A DNA stretch of 64,000 nt from Piromyces finnis finn (Eukaryota; Fungi; Neocallimastigomycota). The stretch lies in contig MCFH01000038.1 of the NCBI GenBank assembly GCA_002104945.1, positions 248,001-312,000 of the forward strand. Reading direction: 5' to 3'. This document shows positions 12,501-24,332 of this stretch, one piece after another. Every line of letters starts with the position of its first letter. Position 1 is the stretch's first letter. The translations under genes were made by a program, and so were the position numbers. The notes beneath the pieces were generated by a model. It ran no database searches, was not told where the DNA came from, and saw nothing but the letters and a program-made list of their open reading frames with translations.

Positions 12501-14884
12501 AAGGTACTATTCAAGTAATCCTTCTTTTAAATACTTAATAAATGTACTATTCAAGTAATCTCTTTTTTTTAAAATGATTTTATAAAAGTGTTATAAAAAG
12601 TAATACCTTTTTTTTTTTTCCTTTTTTCTCATTGTACCTGATTTTTTTAAAGTTTTTTTTTTAATGTATTTTCTAATTAAAGTTTATTTTTTTTTAAATT
12701 AAATAATTATAAGATTCAATTGTAAATGTATTGTATATATATGCTATAAATATATTATTTATAGAATTTATATATTAATCCAATTTAATTGTCAATCTTT
12801 TTAAAAAACATTTTTTTAAAAAAAGCGATTTTTAATATTTTTACATGTTAATAAAAAGATATAATAAAAAAAAAAAAAAGGAAATGGATTAAGAACTATC
12901 TTAATTAATAATACTATTATTATTTGTCTTTTTAATAATAATAGTAATAATGGTTATAAAAAGAATAATAATTATTGAGCTTTTTTTTTTTTTTTTTTAA
13001 TCAAAAATTCTTAGACATTCTATTATTCCACAAAAGTTTAAAATTAATTAAAAAAAAAAAAATCAGGATATTTTAAATATTTTTTTTCTCTGACATATGA
13101 AAGATAATAAAGTATAATAAAATATTCTATACGTTTATTACTTTTCAACCATGAACTAATGATTAATAATAATAAAAACTTTTATTTATAAGGATAGTGT
13201 TAAAAAACAGTAAAGAGAAAACTAAAAAGAACTTTTTTTATTTTTCTTTTTAAATTAACTATTTCATTTTTTTTTTTAAAAAAAAATAAGAAAATTTAAT
13301 TATTCTATTAAATTATTTATTAAATAATATATTAAAGTTTTTTTTTTACTAATTTAATTATTAATAAAAATATATATCATTATAGGTAAAGTTGTAAAAG
13401 TTATTATTAAAAAAAAAATTGTATATATAAAATAAAAAAAAAAAAGTATTAAAAGTTTTCTTTCTTTTTTCTTTTTCTTTGATAAAACAAATATTCTAAT
13501 ATAAAACCACGCAAGAAATAATTAAGAGTGTATAGAGTTAAAGAAATATTTTTAACAATTAAAACTTATGATTATTTTAAAAGTAAAAAATTACATAAAG
13601 AAATAATATCTTTTTTTTTTTTTTTTTAGTCATATTATAATTATAAAGGTAATAACAATTTTGAAAAGATATTATTAATAATATTTAAATGAAATGGGGA
13701 TGATAATGAAAAGAAGAAACAGTAAAGATTTCAATAAAGAGACGAATAAAGCTAGAAAAAGTTATGAATAAAGGTGTTAAAATCAACAATTTAAAGAAAT
13801 TAAATATATTTTAATAGATATTTATCATTATTGTATAAAATTTTTATTGTATAAAAAAGCATAAAAAGAAAGTATTAAAAAACGTTTTATCTATAGGTTA
13901 TAATGATAGCATAATATAATATAATTGTACTAACAGTGTTACACGTATATTCCATATAAAAAATGTATCCATGCATATTTAAAAACTGCATCTATCATGA
14001 ATAATGCAATTAATAGAAATAGTAATATAATTATTATTTATGAATTGCTTGAAGGAAAAAGAAAAAAAAGAAAAACTTTAAAACTGTTAAAAAATATTTT
14101 ATTTGATGAAGAATATAATACTAACCATATACTCTTTTAATATTTTTAAAATATTGTTTTTTTTTAGAGTTTATAATATAATAATATCCAAAAAAAAAAA
14201 AAAAAAAAAACGTACATATACATATAAAGATATCAATATTAAACAGAGTTTTTCTACACAAATAATAATATATAAAAAAGGAGAGAGTTTTATATTTTGT
14301 TATTTTGCTGTATAAAAATTTAATATATAAGATATAAGAAAACACTCTAATTCAACCAAAAAAAAAAAAAAGGTACCTCATTGTAGAAAAAAAAAACATT
14401 TTTACAAAATAAACAAAAAAAAAAACGTAGGTGTAATTAATTAAAAATAAAAATTAAAATTTTAATCCAAATTTTATTTATATTTAAAAAATTTTTAATT
14501 AAATCTTTTTTAAAATCATAATCATTATAAAGGAATCACATTTTTTAATTATTTTTATTATTATCATAATTTTTTTTTTCATAGAGAATAAACAGCCATT
14601 GCAACAACAGAATTTAAAAAAAACAAAAACAGCAACAGATTTAATTCCAGGATATTAACTAAAAAAATTTATTTTTAGAATTTTTTTTTTTTAAAAAAAA
14701 ACTTTTTATTATAGGAATATTATTTTTCATAAAAAGAAAATAATTTAAACATTAATTTTTATTCATAAAATACGCGTTTCTATTACTAAATATAGTCAGT
14801 TATTTATCAAGATTTTTTTCTATTGAGATATAAAAATTAGTTATTTCTTTTTTTTTTAAATCTATAAATTAATAAATTTTTAAT

Positions 14885-17800
14885 ATGGTTGTTCAAGATA
14901 ATATATTATCAAAAAAATATGGTAACAATATTGTTACTTTAGTTGATTCAACTGGTGCAATTCATATTCATGATAAATCACCCCTTTCTTCAATAAAAAG
15001 TACAAATAAATATTTCAACTTTAAATCCTCTTCATTTCTTTCATTAAATAAAGAATTAAAGGTTAAACTTGAAGCAGAAAAAGCTATTAAAGAATATGGT
15101 TTAGGATCTTACGGTATTTTTACTCCTTATCATGCGGAATTAACGGAATATATAGAAAAAATTTATGGGGAAGATTGTTCTATTCGAACTTTTCAAAATG
15201 ATATACGTGATATTTTATTTAATAGTTTGGTTAGTTCTCAAGATTTTATTTTCATTGACGAACAATTGAACACTTCTTTTAAACAAACAATAAAATCATT
15301 ATTCTTAGAAAAGGGTCATATTATTGAATATACTCATAATACTCCACTTGACCTTAAATCTCAATTAAAAGCAATCCAATTAAAATTTCCAACAGTAAAT
15401 AAATTTATAATAACCGAAGGTGTTTTTGAAAATATAGGTAAAACACATGTAATATTTTCATTTTACATATAAATTTTAGAATTTTATAAATAGAAATATA
15501 TATAAAAGTATTATATAATAAAATAAAACATTATTTTTTATTAAATTTGATACAATATACTAAATCTATATGCATATATGTAATAATAATTATGAAATTT
15601 TATTAGGGGATGTTTGTTATCTTAATGATATTATGGATATATCAAAAGAATTTGGATGTACTCTTGTTTTAGATGAATCAAATGCTTTAGGGGTTATCGG
15701 TCAAAAAGGATTTGGTTCATATGACTATCACCAATGTCAACAAAAAGCAGATATTATTTTTTGCTCTATGGATAAAACACTCTGTTCTAGCGGTCAATTT
15801 TATGTATTTAATAATAAAAGTATTAGTATATTATTAAAAAATAATACTAGTCTCTTTGATGAATCCATATATTACCCAATAAATGCATTATCAGCTGCTG
15901 TTGCTAAAACAGTCTTAAATATAATTTTTGAAAATACTACAGATTTTAAAAATATAACATCTTCCATAGATGTTCACACTCAACTAGTTGATAATATTAA
16001 TTATTGGAAACAAAAATGTCAAAGTATTGGCTTAAAATTAATTGACAGTCCTTCTGCAATTACTTCAATTATTATTGATGATGTAGATGCTGAATCTTTA
16101 GTTGAACTTTTATTTAAAAATAATATAAGTAAGTTATTAAATATATACATATATAATAGTATAAATACATATGAATGAAGCTTGAATAAAAAAATAATGG
16201 AAATTTATTATTTTCCATTTTTTATAGATTAATAAAAGAAAATGATAAAAAAATTTTTTTATTTAATATTTCTTGTAATCTTTTATTTTATATAGGATAT
16301 CATAATATTATTAATATTATAATTTAAAAAAAGTTTTTTAATAATAATAATAATATTATTATTATTATTTATAAAAAAAACTAAATACTAATTTAATTTA
16401 TTATATATACATATCTTTCTATATATTAAATATTCTTTCCTTTTTTTTCTCCTTGGAATATTATAAATCTTAAATGATATTAACATCATAGAATGTTCAT
16501 TTACCAAACAAATAAATCATAATATTAATACAAATATTTTAAAATTCAATATATTAAGATCAATGACTAAAAAATTCATAAATGAAGCCTTTAACATTTT
16601 ACAATCAGTATTAATAAATTATTACCCTCATTTAATACACATGTCTACTATTCCAAAAGAAATTCAAATTGAAAATATGATTGATCCAACACAGCAAACA
16701 TCATCTCTTTTAAATGAAAATATTATCGACAGTAGTGATGTTACGGATTATCCAAAGGCTTATCCAAAGTTTGCTATTATTGGTACAGGTATTCGTTTAC
16801 CAGGTGATATTAATAATAAGGATGATTTCTGGAAGGTAATGATAGAGAAAAAAGTAATTACTGGTCTTACTCCAGAAGATCGTTGGGATCGTGATGAATG
16901 GTATTGTAAGACAGAAAAGCCCGGAACAATTCAAACTTTATATGGTGGTTTTATCGAGAATGCTTTTGATTTTGATAATAAATTCTTTTCTATTTCCCAA
17001 AAAGAAGCATTAGATGCTACTCCGGAACAAAGATGGCTTTGTGAATTAACTGTTGAAACCATTGAAGATGCCAATATTAATATTGATAAATTTAAAGGAA
17101 GTAATACTGGTGTTTTTGTTGGTACTTCAGGTATAGATTATGGTAGTTACGTTTTTTCAGTACCAGAAAAAATTACAAAATATACTTATAGTGGAATTGA
17201 ACCTTCTATTCATGCCAATCGTGTTTCTTATCTTTTCGATCTTCACGGTCCATCATTATCCACCAATACCGCTTGCTCTTCTTCATTGACTGCTTTATCC
17301 ATTGCTTGTAATTCTATGGCCGCTGGTGATTGTGAAATGGCTATTGTCGCTGGTACTAATTTCTTCCAAGCTCCAGCAAATGGTGTTGCCTATTCTCAAC
17401 TTCGTGTTGTATCAAAGAAAGGCGCTTGTCGTCCATTCGATAGTGGTGCTGATGGTTATGCTCGTTTAGAAGGTGCTGGTATGGTTTTATTAAAACCTTA
17501 TGAAAAGGCCATCCGAGATAATAATAAAATTTATGCTACTATTTTAAGTACTGCTTGTAATGAAGATGGAAAAACTGCTTCTTTAACTACTCCATCTTCC
17601 AAAGCCCAATATAAATTAATGAAGCGTGTTTATGAAAAGGGTCATATTGATCCATGTACTATTGATTTTATTGAAGCTCATGGTACTGGTACTGCTGTTG
17701 GTGATCCAATTGAGGCTAGTTCCATTGGTGAAGCTTATGGTAAAATTAATAAAGCCAATGGAAATCCAGCCATCCCAGTCGGATCCGTTAAAGGTAATGT

Positions 17801-20800
17801 TGGTCATGGTGAATACTTAAGTGGAATTATTGGTTTAATTAAGAGTACCTTAATTCTTCATAAAAATATGATTGTTCCACAAACAGCATTTGATACCCTT
17901 AATCCAAAGATTGAATGTGAAAAATTAGGTATTCGTATTGCTAATAAGATAGAAAAATTTCCAGGTCAAGGACGTCATAGAGTTGCTGTTAACTCTTTCG
18001 GTTTTGGTGGTGCTAATGCAAATGCTATTATAGAAGAGGAACCCCAATTTGATAAAAACAATATTTCTGTATTATTAAAGAAAAATAAAAATGGTGAGGA
18101 AATTCCATGCCCATACGTTGCATTCTTCTCAAATTCCAGTTTACGTCTTTTAAAGGAAACTTTAAAGAAGTGGTTATCTGTTCCAGAAAAGGAATTATTA
18201 CCCATGATTTATTTGAATTCTACCACTAGAACAGTTTTAGCTTATCGTATATTTATTTTTGCTAAAACTACCGAGGAATTTTATCGTACTATTCGTAACT
18301 TTATAGCTGATGATTCTCTTGACAACGGTTACAAAGTCACAGATCAGATGATGTACATTGAAACCAAGAGTAATCGTAAGAAGGGTACTTTAATGGCTTT
18401 TGATGAACCATTGACATATGTCAATTCCTTCCTTAAACATTCTACATATTACAATTGTTGTAGAAATCTTTACTGTAATAATAAATACTTTTCTGATTGT
18501 ATTGATTATTGTGATGGTATTTTCAAGGCTTTAAGTCAACGTTCTCTTCTTCAAGATTACGGCTTATTTACTACTGAAATGATGGATAACAATAAATTTA
18601 AAAAATTTAATTCTGATCTTAGAAAGGATCCATTAGTCATGATAATGTTTGGTGGTATGGTTCAATTAACTTTGTCTGCCTTATTAAAATATTATGGTCT
18701 ATTTCCTAATGCAGTTATTGGTTATGGTGCTGGTGAAATTGTTGCTGCCTATGTTGCTGATAAGATGGATTTAAAGACTACGGTTAAAGTTCTTTACCAC
18801 TATGGTAGAGTTTTAAGTCACGCTTACTCTCAAGAAAATAAGGTTTATACTCTTACTTTAATCTGTCCAATTAGTAAAATTAAACAAACCATTTTCACCA
18901 AACTAAATCAAGATGAAAAAGATGGCATATCAATTTCGGGTATTCCAAGTCCAAAGTTCTGTTTACTTAGTGGTGACTATAATATCATGAAAAAGGTTTC
19001 CGATATTGCCAAGAGTGAAAATATTGCCATTTATGGTGCTATGCAAAATAATTATGGCTTACATTCAATGATGATTAATGATAAAATGAAGGAAGATCTT
19101 GTGAACAGTCTTAAGGACATTCCTTTACAAACTTCTGATATTGCTTTCTTCACTACCACTAAGCTCAATAAGGATGGTAAGCCATACGAAGGAAAACTAG
19201 ACGGTGAATACTGGTGGATGAATATGAGAAATCCAGTTCTTTATGCTCACGCTTTATCTCAAACAGTCGCCTTTTTACCAATAGATGGTAAGAATATAAT
19301 AGAAATTGGTTTTGGTTTTGATTCCATTGTCCTTAACGATGCTTCTAGTACTTTCTATGAAAAAGAAAGAATATACAACTTATTTACTTTTGATAAATTT
19401 AAGATGAATAATGCTACTAATTATGATGTATCCTTTGTTCAATTAATCCATTTCATGGCTACCCTTCATGGCTACAATGTCACAAATAATCTTGACTATA
19501 ATCATCTTTGGGAGTCTTATGTTCAAGTTGTTGGTGGACATAATACATTACAACAACTTTATAGTATGCACTATGATATTCCTACTCGTTGTTGGAATCA
19601 TAAATATTTAAGAAAGTATTTCAAAGCAGAAAGAAATGGTCTTCCAGGTAATGTTGATGTTGGTATTAAAACTGAAGATATAGTGTACTTGGAAAAACTT
19701 AATCAAAAAGACCATTCAAAGTCTGTACCATCAAAGGAAGAAACCATGAAAAAAGAAGATATTACCATTAAGTCAGAACCAAAGAGAATTGAAAAAAGTA
19801 CTTCAGCTCCAATCAAGGAAACTAAAACTGTTACTAATGACACTGTTAAACCATTACCAAAAGCACATTCAACTTCTAAAATTGTTAACTTATCTGCCTT
19901 TCAAGCCAAATCTTCTTCTTCCTCCTCCTCAAATATTAACGAAAATTCTTCTAGCCATTATAATAACTCTAGTAATGATAATAACAAAAATCATTCTGTT
20001 CATTTAAAGCAAAATCATCCATCAATTTCAAATCCAATACAAAATAAAATTAGTACAACTACTGTTGAAGATTTTGCTACGGAAGATGATGAATTTTGGA
20101 GTTATGAAAATAATCAATATTTAGTAGATCATAAGGTGAATAACCAAATCGTTTTCCCAGCAGCAGGTAGTGTAAGTCGTGCAATGTATGGTTTCTTGAA
20201 TAGTAGAAATTCTCAAAAAATACAAGAAAGTAAGGGTCATGTCGCTTTAACTCAATTAGAATTTACAAGTTTATCTGTATTCCAAAAACGTGCTGAAGAT
20301 CAATTAAATAGTAAGGGCCCTATTCCAATGAAACTTTATGAAGATAAGAATCATCAATTTACTTTAAAACATCAAGATGGTTCAATTATTAGTAAGGGTA
20401 ATTTTGTTGAAATTGCAAAGGAATTTACTGATTTCCCTAATCTTTCGGATGTTGTCAAGAGCTGCACCACTGTCATGGGTGGTAAAGGAATTCATAAAGA
20501 TCTTATTTATCAACGTGCAGCAGCTATTCAACTCCAATATGGACCAGAATTCCAATTAATTCAATCTGGCCGTTCTGGAAGAAACTATTCCTATGTAAAA
20601 ATAAGGGTTACTGAAGAACATTCAAAGATGATATGTCATCCAGCTGTCTTAGATAACTGTTTCCATTCTATTATAACTTTAGGGTTAGGTAGTGGTAATC
20701 GCCAAGTTCTCCCACATAGGATAAAGAGTATTGAAATGACTAATGGAGGTCACTTTAAACCTGGTCTTATCACTTGTGTCAGTCAATTAATATACCAAGA

Positions 20801-23800
20801 TTTAGACAGTGTTATCATTAATTTCTATGTTTATGATGAAGAAGGTCATCCATTATCTAAAATCAGTAATATGGAATTCTTAGTTAGAAAGATAAATATT
20901 GTTCGTCCATTAGATTGGCATAATGTTCTAAAGTATGAAAAGGTGAAGGCATCCGAACAAAAATCGTTTTCAATTTCATGTTCTCAAGTTGTTATTATGG
21001 GTAGTGCAAAACAGGCTGATGCTATTAATATACATATTGTTCCAACCCTCTCCAGCATGAACCTTAAAGTTTATCTTATCACCGAAAATCATAACCAAAC
21101 TATTGACTATATGCTTCAAAATAATTTCATTACCAAAACGAATACCACCATTGTTGATGTTACCCTCTTGGATGACACCTCCATAACTACGGCATTTACA
21201 AAGATTCAATATTATGTCTCCCAAGGACTGAACCTTATTATTGGTAACATTATTATGACTAATGCCAAGGTAGAAGAAAATATTGAAAGCCTATTTACGG
21301 CTTCTAATACTATTTCTAGTATGTTAAGAGTGGCTCGTGCTGAATCTAGAGATTGTCATATGTATTCTATTCAAGCAAATTCAATTGATGACTTTGCCAA
21401 AGGTCTCTTCTCTGGTTGTCTTGGAAAAGATGAACCAGATGTTATTTACAGTAAGGAATATGGTCTTCATGTCCCAAGATTAGTTCGTGAAACGACTATT
21501 CCAACAATTCATTCCAAGAATGTTATTTCTGAACCAAAACGTTTTGGTAATATTAATAAGACAATCTTCAGAAAAACTTATGGAATTCCTGACCTTTCCA
21601 AACATGAAATGGATAAGGAGAGTGTTGTGGTAAAAGTTAGTACAATTTCTCTTCAAAATAATGATATTCTTCAAAATTCCTTACCAGATCTTTCAAGTCT
21701 TATGAAGGATTCCAGTGTTGCTGAATGTATTGGTACTATTGTTCATACAGGTTCTAATGTTAAAAACTTTAAAAAAGGCGATGTTGTCTTTGGTTTGAAT
21801 CTTCAGGCAAATGATATTCCATCAACATACGTTAAGATTCATCAAGATTTGGTTTTCCCAGTGAATACTATGGATATGGATAAGCAAAATAACCTTCTTT
21901 CATCTGTTTATGCTTACACCGTAGCTATTTATCTTTTAAATGAAATTCCAACAGGTGAATCTGTCCTTATTTCAACGGATGCAAGTGATTTAATGCAAGC
22001 TTTAGCTACCATTGCTCAACAGAAAGGTATTAACCTCTTTATCGATGATACATCTTCAAAATACAGTAAAGCTAATAGCAATGCCTTCAAGAATATTAAA
22101 GCCCAAATGATAAATACTCGTCAAGCATCCGAATACGTTCGTCTTGTCAAACAACATACGAATGGTGAAGGTGTTGGTGTTATTATTGACATTAATGTAA
22201 AGTTTGATAAGGAAAACACACTAGAAAAATGTTTAAGAATTGATGGTGAATATATCAAGGTTGGAAATATTGATCAAAGTACCAAGAAAAGAACTACCCA
22301 TAAGATAGTTCAAATGAGTCATTTTAAGGATAATGTCATTACTCCAGTAGTCCGTCAAGCAGTGGAAATGATTATTCATGGTAAGGTTGAAGCCATTGAT
22401 CTTAAGACATATCCAGTTTCTAAAATAAATTCTGCTACACTTGAAATATTAAGTGGTCGTCTTCAAGGTAAATCTTGTCTTGAAATGTGTAAGAAGGGTG
22501 AAGATGACATAGAATTTGAGTGCCTTCCAAGTCGTGTCTTTAAGGAAAATAAATCCTATTTGATTACCGGTGCTTTTGGTGGTATTGGCTTAAAAGTTGG
22601 TCTTTGGATGCAACTTCGTGGTGCTCGTCATATTGTATTAACAACATCGTCTGATCCAGAGAGTAAATATAAGCATCCAATTGTTAATGCTTTACGTCAA
22701 AAAGGTGTTCATGTCACCATTACTAAATGTGATATTTCAAAGTATGATGAAGTTGAAAAGCTTTTCATGGAAACCACACCAGCAATCGATGGTGTTTTCC
22801 ATTTCGCTAATAAATTCGGTCCAAAGCTTATCAGGGATTCTAGCCTAGATAGTTTTAATACAGCATTTGAACCAAAAGCAAGAGGTGCATTAAATCTTCA
22901 TAAAATAAGTCAAAAAGGATTCTCACTTTCTTCCTTTGTTCTTTTCTCCTCTGTTTTAGATATTCTTGGTAATTCTGGTCAAATGGCATATGGTGCTGCA
23001 AATTCTTACCTTAATAATCTTATTTATTATAGAAGACGTAAAGGTCTTTCTGGTCAATGCTTCTCATTACCAGCCATGAAAGGTTCTGGTTACCTTTCCC
23101 AATGGAACCAAATCACTCAATCTCGTGAATTTTCTGAAGTTATAGAATTCCTTGATTCAGAAGACTTACCTGACATTCTTGACTTTTTCCTTCGAGATGA
23201 TGTTGATCCATGCCTTCAATTGCTTTCTGGCATTCAAATTAATGATAAAGTCATCAATAAACATATTGCCCCAATTACCAATATTGTAAAGTATAAAATT
23301 CATTCAGAAATTGATGTACCTCAATTGATACAAAATCAATTCCCACCACTTAAATTCCGAAAGATCTTAGAAGATAAGGAACAATATATACTAGATAAAT
23401 ATGTTAGAAATACTCATCATTCACCACCATCTAGCACTAATTCTTCAGAAACAGAAGGTGAACAAGTAAGTGATCATAGTTCTTACTCTTCAGTAAGTAG
23501 TACTATTGGAGATAATAGTAATGGTGATAGTAGTGCTATTGAAAGTAATGTTGAATATATTAGTGTTGATGAAAGTATTGATAGTGATAAAACATTACGC
23601 AATCATGAAGATAAGAATAAGAATAGCAGTAGCAAAAAGAAGTATATGAAAAATGTTAATGATAATAAGCATGTCTTTTATAAGCATATAAAGAACGGAA
23701 TCTATAGTTTAGAGATGAAGAATCATTATATGGATATTGAATATGCAGAAGAATTAGGCCAGGTTATCACTAAACTTTCACAACTTAAAAAGATGCAAGC

Positions 23801-24332
23801 CCTCATTATTGAATATGAAGAAGACTTTTCCAAGGGTTTAGAACCTTCTCTTAAGGATGAACTTTTAAAAAAGAATCCTTCCAAATCCAAGATGAATGAA
23901 GTATATAAAATCTACTTTAATTGTCTCAAATTAACCAATCTTAATGTTCCGGTTATTAGTTGTCTTAATGGTGAAATTACGGATCATATAATTTTAATCT
24001 CCCTCTTATCTCAATGGAAGATTGCTACTCGTCGTTCCGTTTTTGCATCTTATAATAATCCTGTTAATATTAGTTGGATGAAAGAATTAGCTAAGAATAG
24101 TAATAATAAAAATTCCATGAAACTTATTAAACAAGTAGAAACCGAAAAAATTAGTGCCATTACTGCCTATAAGCATAAATATATTAATGATATTGCAGCT
24201 AATTTTGAACAAGCAAAAAAGAATGCATTAGAATATGTTGAAAAACTAATAAATAATTCAGAAAATATCGTCCCAGTGATATCAATTAAAACCGAAGATA
24301 TTGTAAAAATCAATAAGGCTATAAAAATATAA
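14885..24332 (+). CDS. Alpha-oxoamine synthase (SPT/LCB1-like)-polyketide synthase fusion: AOS-KS-AT0-DH-pseudoER-KR-crotonase-like, ~2971 aa
   Basis: Exons 14885-15437, 15607-16128 and 16492-24332; introns 15438-15606 (GTAAAA..TTAG) and 16129-16491 (GTAAGT..ATAG), both phase 1 and frame-preserving; total 8916 nt. AOS motifs NFKSSSFLSL, YGLGSYG, TEGVFENIGD, LDESNALGVIG, SMDKTL. KS motifs NTACSSSL, EAHGTGT, GHGE. DH motifs HKVNNQIVFP, HPAVLD. KR motifs GAFGGIG, YGAAN. The PKS part is certain; the fusion rests on the splice model. Confidence 0.82.

Follow-up and report, generated by a model that had tools for sequence, protein, structure and literature searches.

A 64-kb stretch of the Piromyces finnis genome (contig MCFH01000038.1, positions 248,001 to 312,000; hereafter the window, in whose coordinates all positions are given) carries at 14885-24332, on the + strand, one gene of three coding exons, as shown by RNA contigs and the public protein. 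The gene encodes a 2971-aa polyketide synthase (PKS) megasynthase, P. finnis 414372, which begins with a complete alpha-oxoamine synthase (AOS) fold in which key active-site residues have been replaced. On balance, the comparisons favor a domain that is most likely a non-catalytic structural module derived from an AOS-PKS fusion, which would act as a clamp on the ketosynthase (KS) dimer and possibly as a docking surface, with an intact sister family that would off-load a sphingoid-like aminoketone. The pairing of a PKS with an AOS is already known; the N-terminal fusion and the degeneracy of the domain in P. finnis 414372 are new.

Gene structure and transcripts

The window is very AT-rich, and its open reading frame (ORF) track shows three separate + strand ORFs before splicing (14885-15472, 15570-16178, and 16563-24332). 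A preliminary description of this DNA, made from the letters alone, had proposed that two phase-1 introns join these ORFs into one protein of ~2971 aa, and both the transcripts and the public record bear this out. The coding sequence (CDS) is 14885-15437 + 15607-16128 + 16492-24332, or 8916 nt for 2971 aa, and the spliced model is 100% identical to BCR36DRAFT_414372 (JGI Pirfi3 414372; P0001). Intron 1 (15438-15606, +, 169 nt, GT..AG, phase 1) is bordered by G|GTAAAA at 15437/15438 and TTAG|GG at 15606/15607, and lies within the Gly codon of a GVFxxxG|D motif. Intron 2 (16129-16491, +, 363 nt, GTAAGT..AG, phase 1) has its donor, A|GTAAGT, at 16128/16129 and a TACTAAT at 16386-92, after which the first AG is at 16490-91. 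Both joints translate in frame, to ...EGVFENIG-DVCYLN... at the first and ...LFKNNI-K-CSFTKQ... at the second, and the public protein reads ...FENIGDVCYLN... and ...LFKNNIKCSFTKQ... across them, as predicted. In-frame stops upstream fix M1 at 14885.

The RNA evidence comprises four runs (X1-X4) from one organism and three studies, whose assembled contigs, each of which is not to be equated with a single molecule, were compared with the window. An X1 contig of 9302 nt covers 14712-15434, 15604-16128, and 16492-20200+, with 169 and 363 nt removed between GT..AG borders; its first joint is ambiguous by 3 nt and is compatible with 15437/15607. This length is in keeping with the 8916-nt CDS plus untranslated regions (UTRs) and no additional intron. 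In X2, removal of intron 1 is supported by record 8 and that of intron 2 by record 12, which are separate contigs of 737 nt and 8180 nt, and the loose ends of an X3 contig match the exon 1/2 junction. Spliced contigs that remove exactly both predicted introns come from two studies. The junctions 15437/15607 and 16128/16492, which had been named as the transcripts to look for, are both present, and the alternative acceptors at 16227 and 16295, which the preliminary description had set against its own model, are unused in these RNA contigs.

The same description had called the fusion hidden. This does not hold, since the GenBank/JGI model already contains the 2971-aa protein and only an antiSMASH model starts at residue 383. 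P. finnis 414372 is the P. finnis member of the "PKS family 2" of Swift et al. 2021 (PMC8106346), whose antiSMASH model covers residues 383-2971 only. An aminotransferase or oxoamine domain is mentioned neither there nor in the supplements (PMC8106346), and literature searches on anaerobic-fungal PKSs yielded no description of an AOS or aminotransferase domain. The fusion is already annotated publicly, and the AOS domain itself is unrecognized and undiscussed.

An AOS fold completed by the third exon

The structure of the N-terminal domain was modeled with AlphaFold from a 109-row alignment. In this model, about residues 31-408 form a complete AOS fold (pLDDT 89.8, pTM 0.88). The top 50 Foldseek matches are all AOS proteins, aligned over whole chains with TM-scores of 0.70-0.83; bacterial serine palmitoyltransferase (SPT) and KBL come first and LCB1 appears at rank 14. 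Against SPT, KBL, and AONS, the TM-scores are 0.73-0.80 across ~400 columns.

The fold is distributed over all three exons. Exon 1 (CDS 14885-15437, +) encodes aa 1-184 and the first base of the Gly185 codon, and supplies the N-terminal part of the domain including N129. Exon 2 (15607-16128, +; aa 185-359, with codons split at both ends) encodes the core with D207, N210, K241, and the FDES motif. The start of exon 3 (16492-16640, +; aa 359-408) provides the last two strands (361-367 and 370-378) and the final helix (385-402) of the C-terminal domain, with pLDDT of 87-97 over residues 351-410. The proposal that exon 3 completes the AOS fold is borne out by the model, in which residues 359-405 contribute these last strands and the helix, and a phmmer alignment to the AOS of a related PKS, P0014, extends to residue 408. 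The annotated PKS start, M383 (16563), falls within helix 385-402 of the model and hence inside the AOS fold, as had been anticipated.

Sequence searches agree with the structural assignment. In a structure-sequence search, aa 42-181 of exon 1 align to SPT 44-183 (E 4.5e-6), and aa 1-159 of exon 2 align to AOS 188-337 (E 2e-9), collinear with the separate exon 1 match. The spliced domain passes the PF00155 cut-off of 19.7 with 29.7 bits, and Pfam returns only a sub-threshold 13.4 bits for the unspliced pieces. The AOS domain is visible only when it is spliced or searched against structures.

Active-site state of the AOS domain

Orthologs aside, the PKS body is most closely related to other PKSs of anaerobic fungi, which likewise start with an AOS. 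One family is represented by P0014 (N. californiae LY90DRAFT_512986) and P0015 (A. robustus BCR32DRAFT_248107), which are uncharacterized hypothetical proteins with the architecture AOS-KS-AT-DH-ER-KR-ACPx10. Like P. finnis 414372, they carry the AOS N-terminally and directly before a homologous KS-AT-DH-ER-KR, and their AOS domains match that of P. finnis 414372 with 153-155 bits. Another, the "PKS family 6" of Swift et al. (P0005-8; P0005 is P. finnis BCR36DRAFT_316229), reads AOS-KS-AT-DH-ER-KR-ECH-ECH-HMGS, with both AOS and AT degenerate. The canonical and family 6 architectures were checked on database proteins.

The active sites were compared against 107 canonical AOS sequences, in which 38 columns are at least 80% conserved. 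At the positions of the first His, Asn, Asp, second His, Lys, and Arg, the canonical consensus is H, N, D, H, K, and R. P0014/15 have the same residues and keep 32/38 conserved columns, and family 6 has K, N, D, H, Y, and K and keeps 25/38. P. finnis 414372 and its orthologs have N129, R108, D207, N210, K241, and K376 and retain 20/38 columns, fewer than the 25/38 of the LCB1 consensus. The His that stacks on pyridoxal 5'-phosphate (PLP) is replaced by N129 (15269-71) and the O3'-binding His by N210 (15681-83), although each of these His residues is invariant (100%) across the 107 canonical sequences. The Schiff-base Lys persists as K241 (15774-76) and the Asp that contacts PLP N1 as D207, both in all four orthologs. 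The preliminary description had therefore read these positions correctly in stating that both His are replaced by Asn while the Lys is kept.

The losses extend beyond the two His residues. The substrate-carboxylate Arg is K376 (16542-44), the Ser of GVFSMxG is E182, the conserved Asn is R108, the FSxS phosphate loop has become an acidic FDES, and a conserved Gly-containing loop is deleted. Of the features that define the AOS subfamily, the domain has the fold, the PF00155 match with AOS proteins as best structure matches, the Schiff-base Lys, and the PLP-N1 Asp; it lacks both PLP His, the carboxylate Arg, the GVFSMxG Ser, the conserved Asn, and the FSxS loop. P0014/P0015, unlike P. finnis 414372, keep all catalytic residues (H, N, D, H, K, R, R) together with an active-looking AT (GHSMGE) and ten tandem ACPs. 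Family 6 resembles P. finnis 414372 in its degenerate AOS, dead AT, absence of an ACP match, and homologous C-terminal ECH-like domain. It differs in that its Lys has become Tyr and its first His Lys, its second His is kept, and a HMG-CoA-synthase cassette is present.

The PKS body

The remainder of exon 3 (16641-24332, +; stop at 24330-32) encodes a linker followed by KS, AT-like, DH, ER-like, KR, and C-terminal ECH-like domains, so that the megasynthase reads AOS-KS-AT-DH-ER-KR-ECH with AOS, AT, ER, and ECH degenerate. The KS starts at about 16773 (PF00109, 226.8 bits) and has an intact Cys-His-His triad in the motifs TACSSS, EAHGTGT, and GNVGHGE; the triad is intact in all three AOS-PKS families. 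The AT fold is detected with 61.9 bits, but GYGAGE stands in place of the GHSxG nucleophile motif and provides no Ser. Across the families this motif forms a series from GHSMGE (P0014/15) through GYN(S/T)GE (family 6) to GYGAGE (P. finnis 414372).

ACPs are seen only in P0014/15. P. finnis 414372 has no PP-binding Pfam match even at E 5, a result that leaves room for a very divergent ACP, and a tblastn search with the P0014 ACP found nothing within the window. No second AOS is encoded in the window either. In the C-terminal 430 residues, Pfam gives neither an ACP nor a crotonase; the C-terminal domain (23100-24332; aa about 2758-2940) is homologous to the second ECH of P0005 with 54 bits, in a pairwise comparison only. 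As an iterative type I highly reducing PKS, the protein thus has the KS triad and lacks both the AT nucleophile and an ACP in cis.

Orthologs and selection

Three orthologs were found on metagenomic contigs. They share 58-74% identity with P. finnis 414372 overall and about 60-72% in the AOS domain (52-74% per exon). L001 and L002/L003 have all three exons, and L004 lacks exon 1 but keeps the intron 1 acceptor. Both introns are at the same positions in the orthologs, the site of intron 1 being seen in L001 and L003, and the active-site substitutions are fixed across all three. Nei-Gojobori dN/dS values for P. finnis 414372 against two orthologs are 0.27-0.33 for the AOS domain, 0.25 for the dead AT, 0.12-0.17 for the KR, and 0.06 for the KS. 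Judged by these ratios, the AOS domain is under purifying selection, yet as loosely as the dead AT.

Origin of the AOS domain

The preliminary description had found several motifs of the domain closer to LCB1, the non-catalytic subunit of SPT, than to BioF or LCB2. As a ranking of those three this stands: residues 1-425 score 67 bits against Arabidopsis LCB1 and 52-54 against human and yeast LCB1, compared with 33-39 for LCB2 and 38 for E. coli BioF. As a statement of nearest kinship it does not, since Sphingobacterium SPT (E 3e-22, 82 bits) and KBL (71 bits) score higher, and PKS-fused paralogs reach 153-168 bits. Other AOS proteins remain at or below 106 bits (among the 150 best of 1.84 billion representatives) and LCB1-like sequences at or below 88. 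Profile scores follow the same order, with 229 for PKS-AOS, 190 for canonical single-domain AOS, 145 for LCB1-like, and 89 for LCB2-like sequences.

A maximum-likelihood (ML) tree of 80 sequences (LG+C20, SH-aLRT support) unites the three PKS-AOS families (99) and, within them, pairs the P. finnis 414372 family with family 6 as its sister group (98). LCB1-like sequences form a clade of their own elsewhere in the tree (SH-aLRT 100). The position and phase of intron 1 are common to a canonical paralog from A. robustus, L006, in the same Gly codon of GVFxxxG|D, and we estimate the probability of sharing this site by chance to be of the order of 1%, which is unlikely. Approximately unbiased (AU) tests that force a grouping with LCB1 do not reject it (delta lnL 4.5, p 0.42; with a stricter constraint, delta lnL 20, p 0.27), and we therefore do not claim that the tree alone settles the origin. 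The P. finnis 414372 family and the LCB1 clade both sit on long branches and share their column losses. Most probably, as far as the sequences go, the AOS domain traces back to an N-terminal fusion of AOS and PKS that was ancestral in anaerobic gut fungi, and its resemblance to LCB1 is read as convergent loss and not as ancestry. The tree and the shared intron 1 thus favor a PKS-AOS over the LCB1 origin that the earlier motif comparison had suggested, although the AU tests leave the latter unrejected.

L006 (A. robustus MCFG01000258.1, 1501-3983) has four introns in its AOS domain, after aa 67, 135, 213, and 244, of which only that after aa 213 is shared. The family 6 gene L005 has two AOS introns, neither at the intron 1 site. 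A word-indexed search with the AOS region of P0001 returned orthologs only, within the limited reach of a word index. With P0014, the matches among large proteins were anaerobic-fungal only, which is no proof of absence elsewhere.

Comparison with known systems

In the fumonisin (Fum1/Fum8), myriocin, and sphingofungin pathways, a PKS works with a separate AOS protein. Bacterial sphinganine synthesis by SgaA/SgaB likewise uses a PKS and an AOS as two proteins (PMC12134224). P. finnis 414372 shares with these systems the joining of an iterative reducing PKS with an SPT/KBL-like AOS, a combination that is likely to be ancestral to the fungal AOS-PKS clade. In the two-protein pathways the AOS is separate and intact, whereas in P. 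finnis 414372 it is fused N-terminally and degenerate.

Other megasynthases have an AOS at the opposite end. SxtA and RedL/PigH carry C-terminal AOS domains, and the proteins P0239, P0165, and P0131, with FAAL-ACP-AOS and ACP-KS-AOS-AOS arrangements, likewise have an AOS fused to carrier or KS machinery. In the C-terminal systems, the AOS is canonical and follows the carrier; in P. finnis 414372 it precedes the KS. A separate metagenome protein from JGI, P0213 (2140 aa), combines an ECH, two tandem AOS domains, and an HMG-CoA synthase, resembling family 6 without the PKS core. Many proteins of about 800-1400 aa (P0124, P0126, P0144, P0148, and others, including one from the foraminifer Bolivina) contain tandem AOS domains, one canonical and LCB2-like and the other Lys-less and LCB1-like; from their sequences, they look like single-chain SPT heterodimers.

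A further parallel is LCB1/SPTLC1, which also has an AOS fold that lost its catalytic residues and is nevertheless conserved. LCB1 has an N-terminal membrane anchor and forms a heterodimer with LCB2. The DESN motif recurs in Arabidopsis LCB1, and in many LCB1-like sequences the first His is likewise replaced by Asn. LCB1-like sequences differ in having no Lys (N, T, H, or another residue occupies that column) and are placed by the tree in a different clade.

Probable role of the domain

AOS enzymes are obligate dimers, and this makes a dimer clamp or a docking partner the likely role for the degenerate domain. Under the structural reading that we favor, the ancestral AOS would have off-loaded ACP-bound chains onto an amino acid, in the manner of Fum1/Fum8 and SgaA/SgaB (PMC12134224). 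In AOS-KS-AT-DH-ER-KR-ACPx10, the intact sister family, the AOS would most probably still free the chain from its ACP, condensing it decarboxylatively with an amino acid, and the product would be a sphingoid-like aminoketone. In the ACP-less and AT-dead P. finnis 414372, the condensation would have been lost and the domain kept for its structure under purifying selection. It could then serve as an N-terminal dimerization clamp atop the KS dimer and possibly also as a docking surface that pairs with the catalytic AOS of an ACP-bearing partner synthase. Given the pattern of active-site losses, canonical condensation by the domain itself appears unlikely.

Several observations weigh against a purely structural role. 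Lys241 and Asp207 are retained in all four orthologs, so the domain may still bind PLP, and in other fold-type I enzymes Asn is able to hydrogen-bond O3'. The substituted pocket columns are invariant in 11/16 cases against a background of 53%, a non-significant difference (p 0.31) that gives a hint of constraint. The domain may then still be a PLP enzyme with altered chemistry, in which Lys241 and Asp207 would hold PLP, Asn would replace His, and an amino acid would be condensed, or transformed in some other way, with a chain made by the PKS or supplied in trans on an ACP or CoA. The invariant Lys and Asp, the AOS fold that the model predicts to be intact, and the purifying selection would all suit such an enzyme. 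We nonetheless regard it as unlikely, although it deserves to be kept in view. Of the conserved pocket, six elements have gone (stacking His, O3' His, Ser, Asn, Arg, and FSxS, which is now FDES) and the Gly loop is deleted, the evolutionary rate of the domain is 4-5 times that of the KS, the same protein has no ACP and a dead AT, and the sister family 6 has lost even the Lys, which indicates that catalysis is dispensable in this sub-clade.

The docking component could be extended, by analogy with the pairing of LCB1 and LCB2, into a docking code, although we consider this rather improbable. The pseudo-AOS would form a heterodimer with the catalytic AOS of the multi-ACP paralog, and ACP-less megasynthases would thereby gather around one carrier-bearing synthase to produce a branched sphingoid-like amino lipid in anaerobic fungi. 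The accessory synthases would be P. finnis 414372, with its KS, KR, and ECH-like domains, and family 6, with its HMGS beta-branching cassette.

LCB1 descent, a relic gene, and a PKS-only isoform were also considered as explanations, and all are ranked low. The preliminary description had suggested that an LCB1-like domain docks the PKS onto an LCB2-type subunit; in the form of docking onto the housekeeping LCB2 of SPT, to which the PKS-made acyl chain would be delivered, we find this very improbable. The lead of LCB1 over LCB2 and BioF, the DESN motif common to Arabidopsis LCB1, and the AU tests (p 0.42 and 0.27) would allow it. Against it, paralogous PKS-AOS domains score about twice as high, and the ML tree and the shared intron favor descent from a canonical PKS-fused AOS. 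K241 is present, unlike in LCB1, and residues 1-425 contain no strongly hydrophobic segment resembling a transmembrane anchor (maximum 1.27 in a 19-aa Kyte-Doolittle window).

We give scarcely any credence to the view that the whole protein is a decaying relic with a functionless N-terminal domain. The degenerate AOS, AT, ER-like, and ECH-like domains and the absent ACP would fit decay; however, the gene is transcribed and correctly spliced in runs of two studies, and orthologs with intact ORFs and conserved introns occur in at least three other lineages. The KS has a dN/dS of 0.06 with its Cys/His/His intact, and the AOS value of ~0.3 is far from ~1. In addition, PKS family 2 was found in all four genera studied by Swift et al. 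(PMC8106346).

Just as hard to credit is a gene with two products, in which the fused mRNA exists and translation mostly begins internally, near 16563, to give a PKS without AOS: contig depth in X2 and X3 is higher downstream and contigs start at 16569 (X3 record 17) and 16475 (X4 record 20), but the high-depth X2 contig starts in exon 2 (15779) and spans the splice junction, X1 is one uniform contig from the 5' UTR on, the AOS exons are under purifying selection and in frame with the PKS, and the differences in depth are consistent with assembly breaks and with the 3' bias of an mRNA of 9 kb. The low-depth X4 contig begins 17 nt within intron 2 and the X3 contig adjoins the ATG of the ORF track; these starts could reflect intron retention, an internal start, or mere assembly breaks, and a minor internal start or intron retention may accompany the main transcript.

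Additional features of the locus

The coding region is preceded by a 5' UTR exon (14585-14884, +), since contigs of all four runs start matching at 14585, after the AG at 14583-84. Unmatched letters precede 14585 in the RNA contigs, and X4 record 19 links 14300-14425 to 14585-14650. These contigs point to a probable 5'-UTR intron of ~158 nt (about 14427-14584) behind a non-coding leader exon. Inside intron 1, the segment 15469-15522 matches several unrelated, highly expressed contigs of X1, X2, and X4 over 21-26 nt; this is probably low-complexity AT-rich similarity and no feature.

Implications

Until now, descriptions of PKS and AOS chemistry have involved separate proteins or a C-terminal AOS, as for the fumonisin-type sphinganine analogues and the SgaAB sphinganines. 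In anaerobic gut fungi, one clade of megasynthases carries its AOS ahead of the KS and forms a natural series from intact to strongly degenerate. Recognition of the AOS domain corrects the published view of the domains of "PKS family 2", for which the analysis had begun at residue 383. P. finnis 414372 stands at the informative end of this series, where a catalytic domain would have turned into a conserved pseudo-enzyme within a PKS, in parallel to LCB1. The intact family is a candidate one-gene route to sphingoid-like lipids and the more attractive biochemical target.

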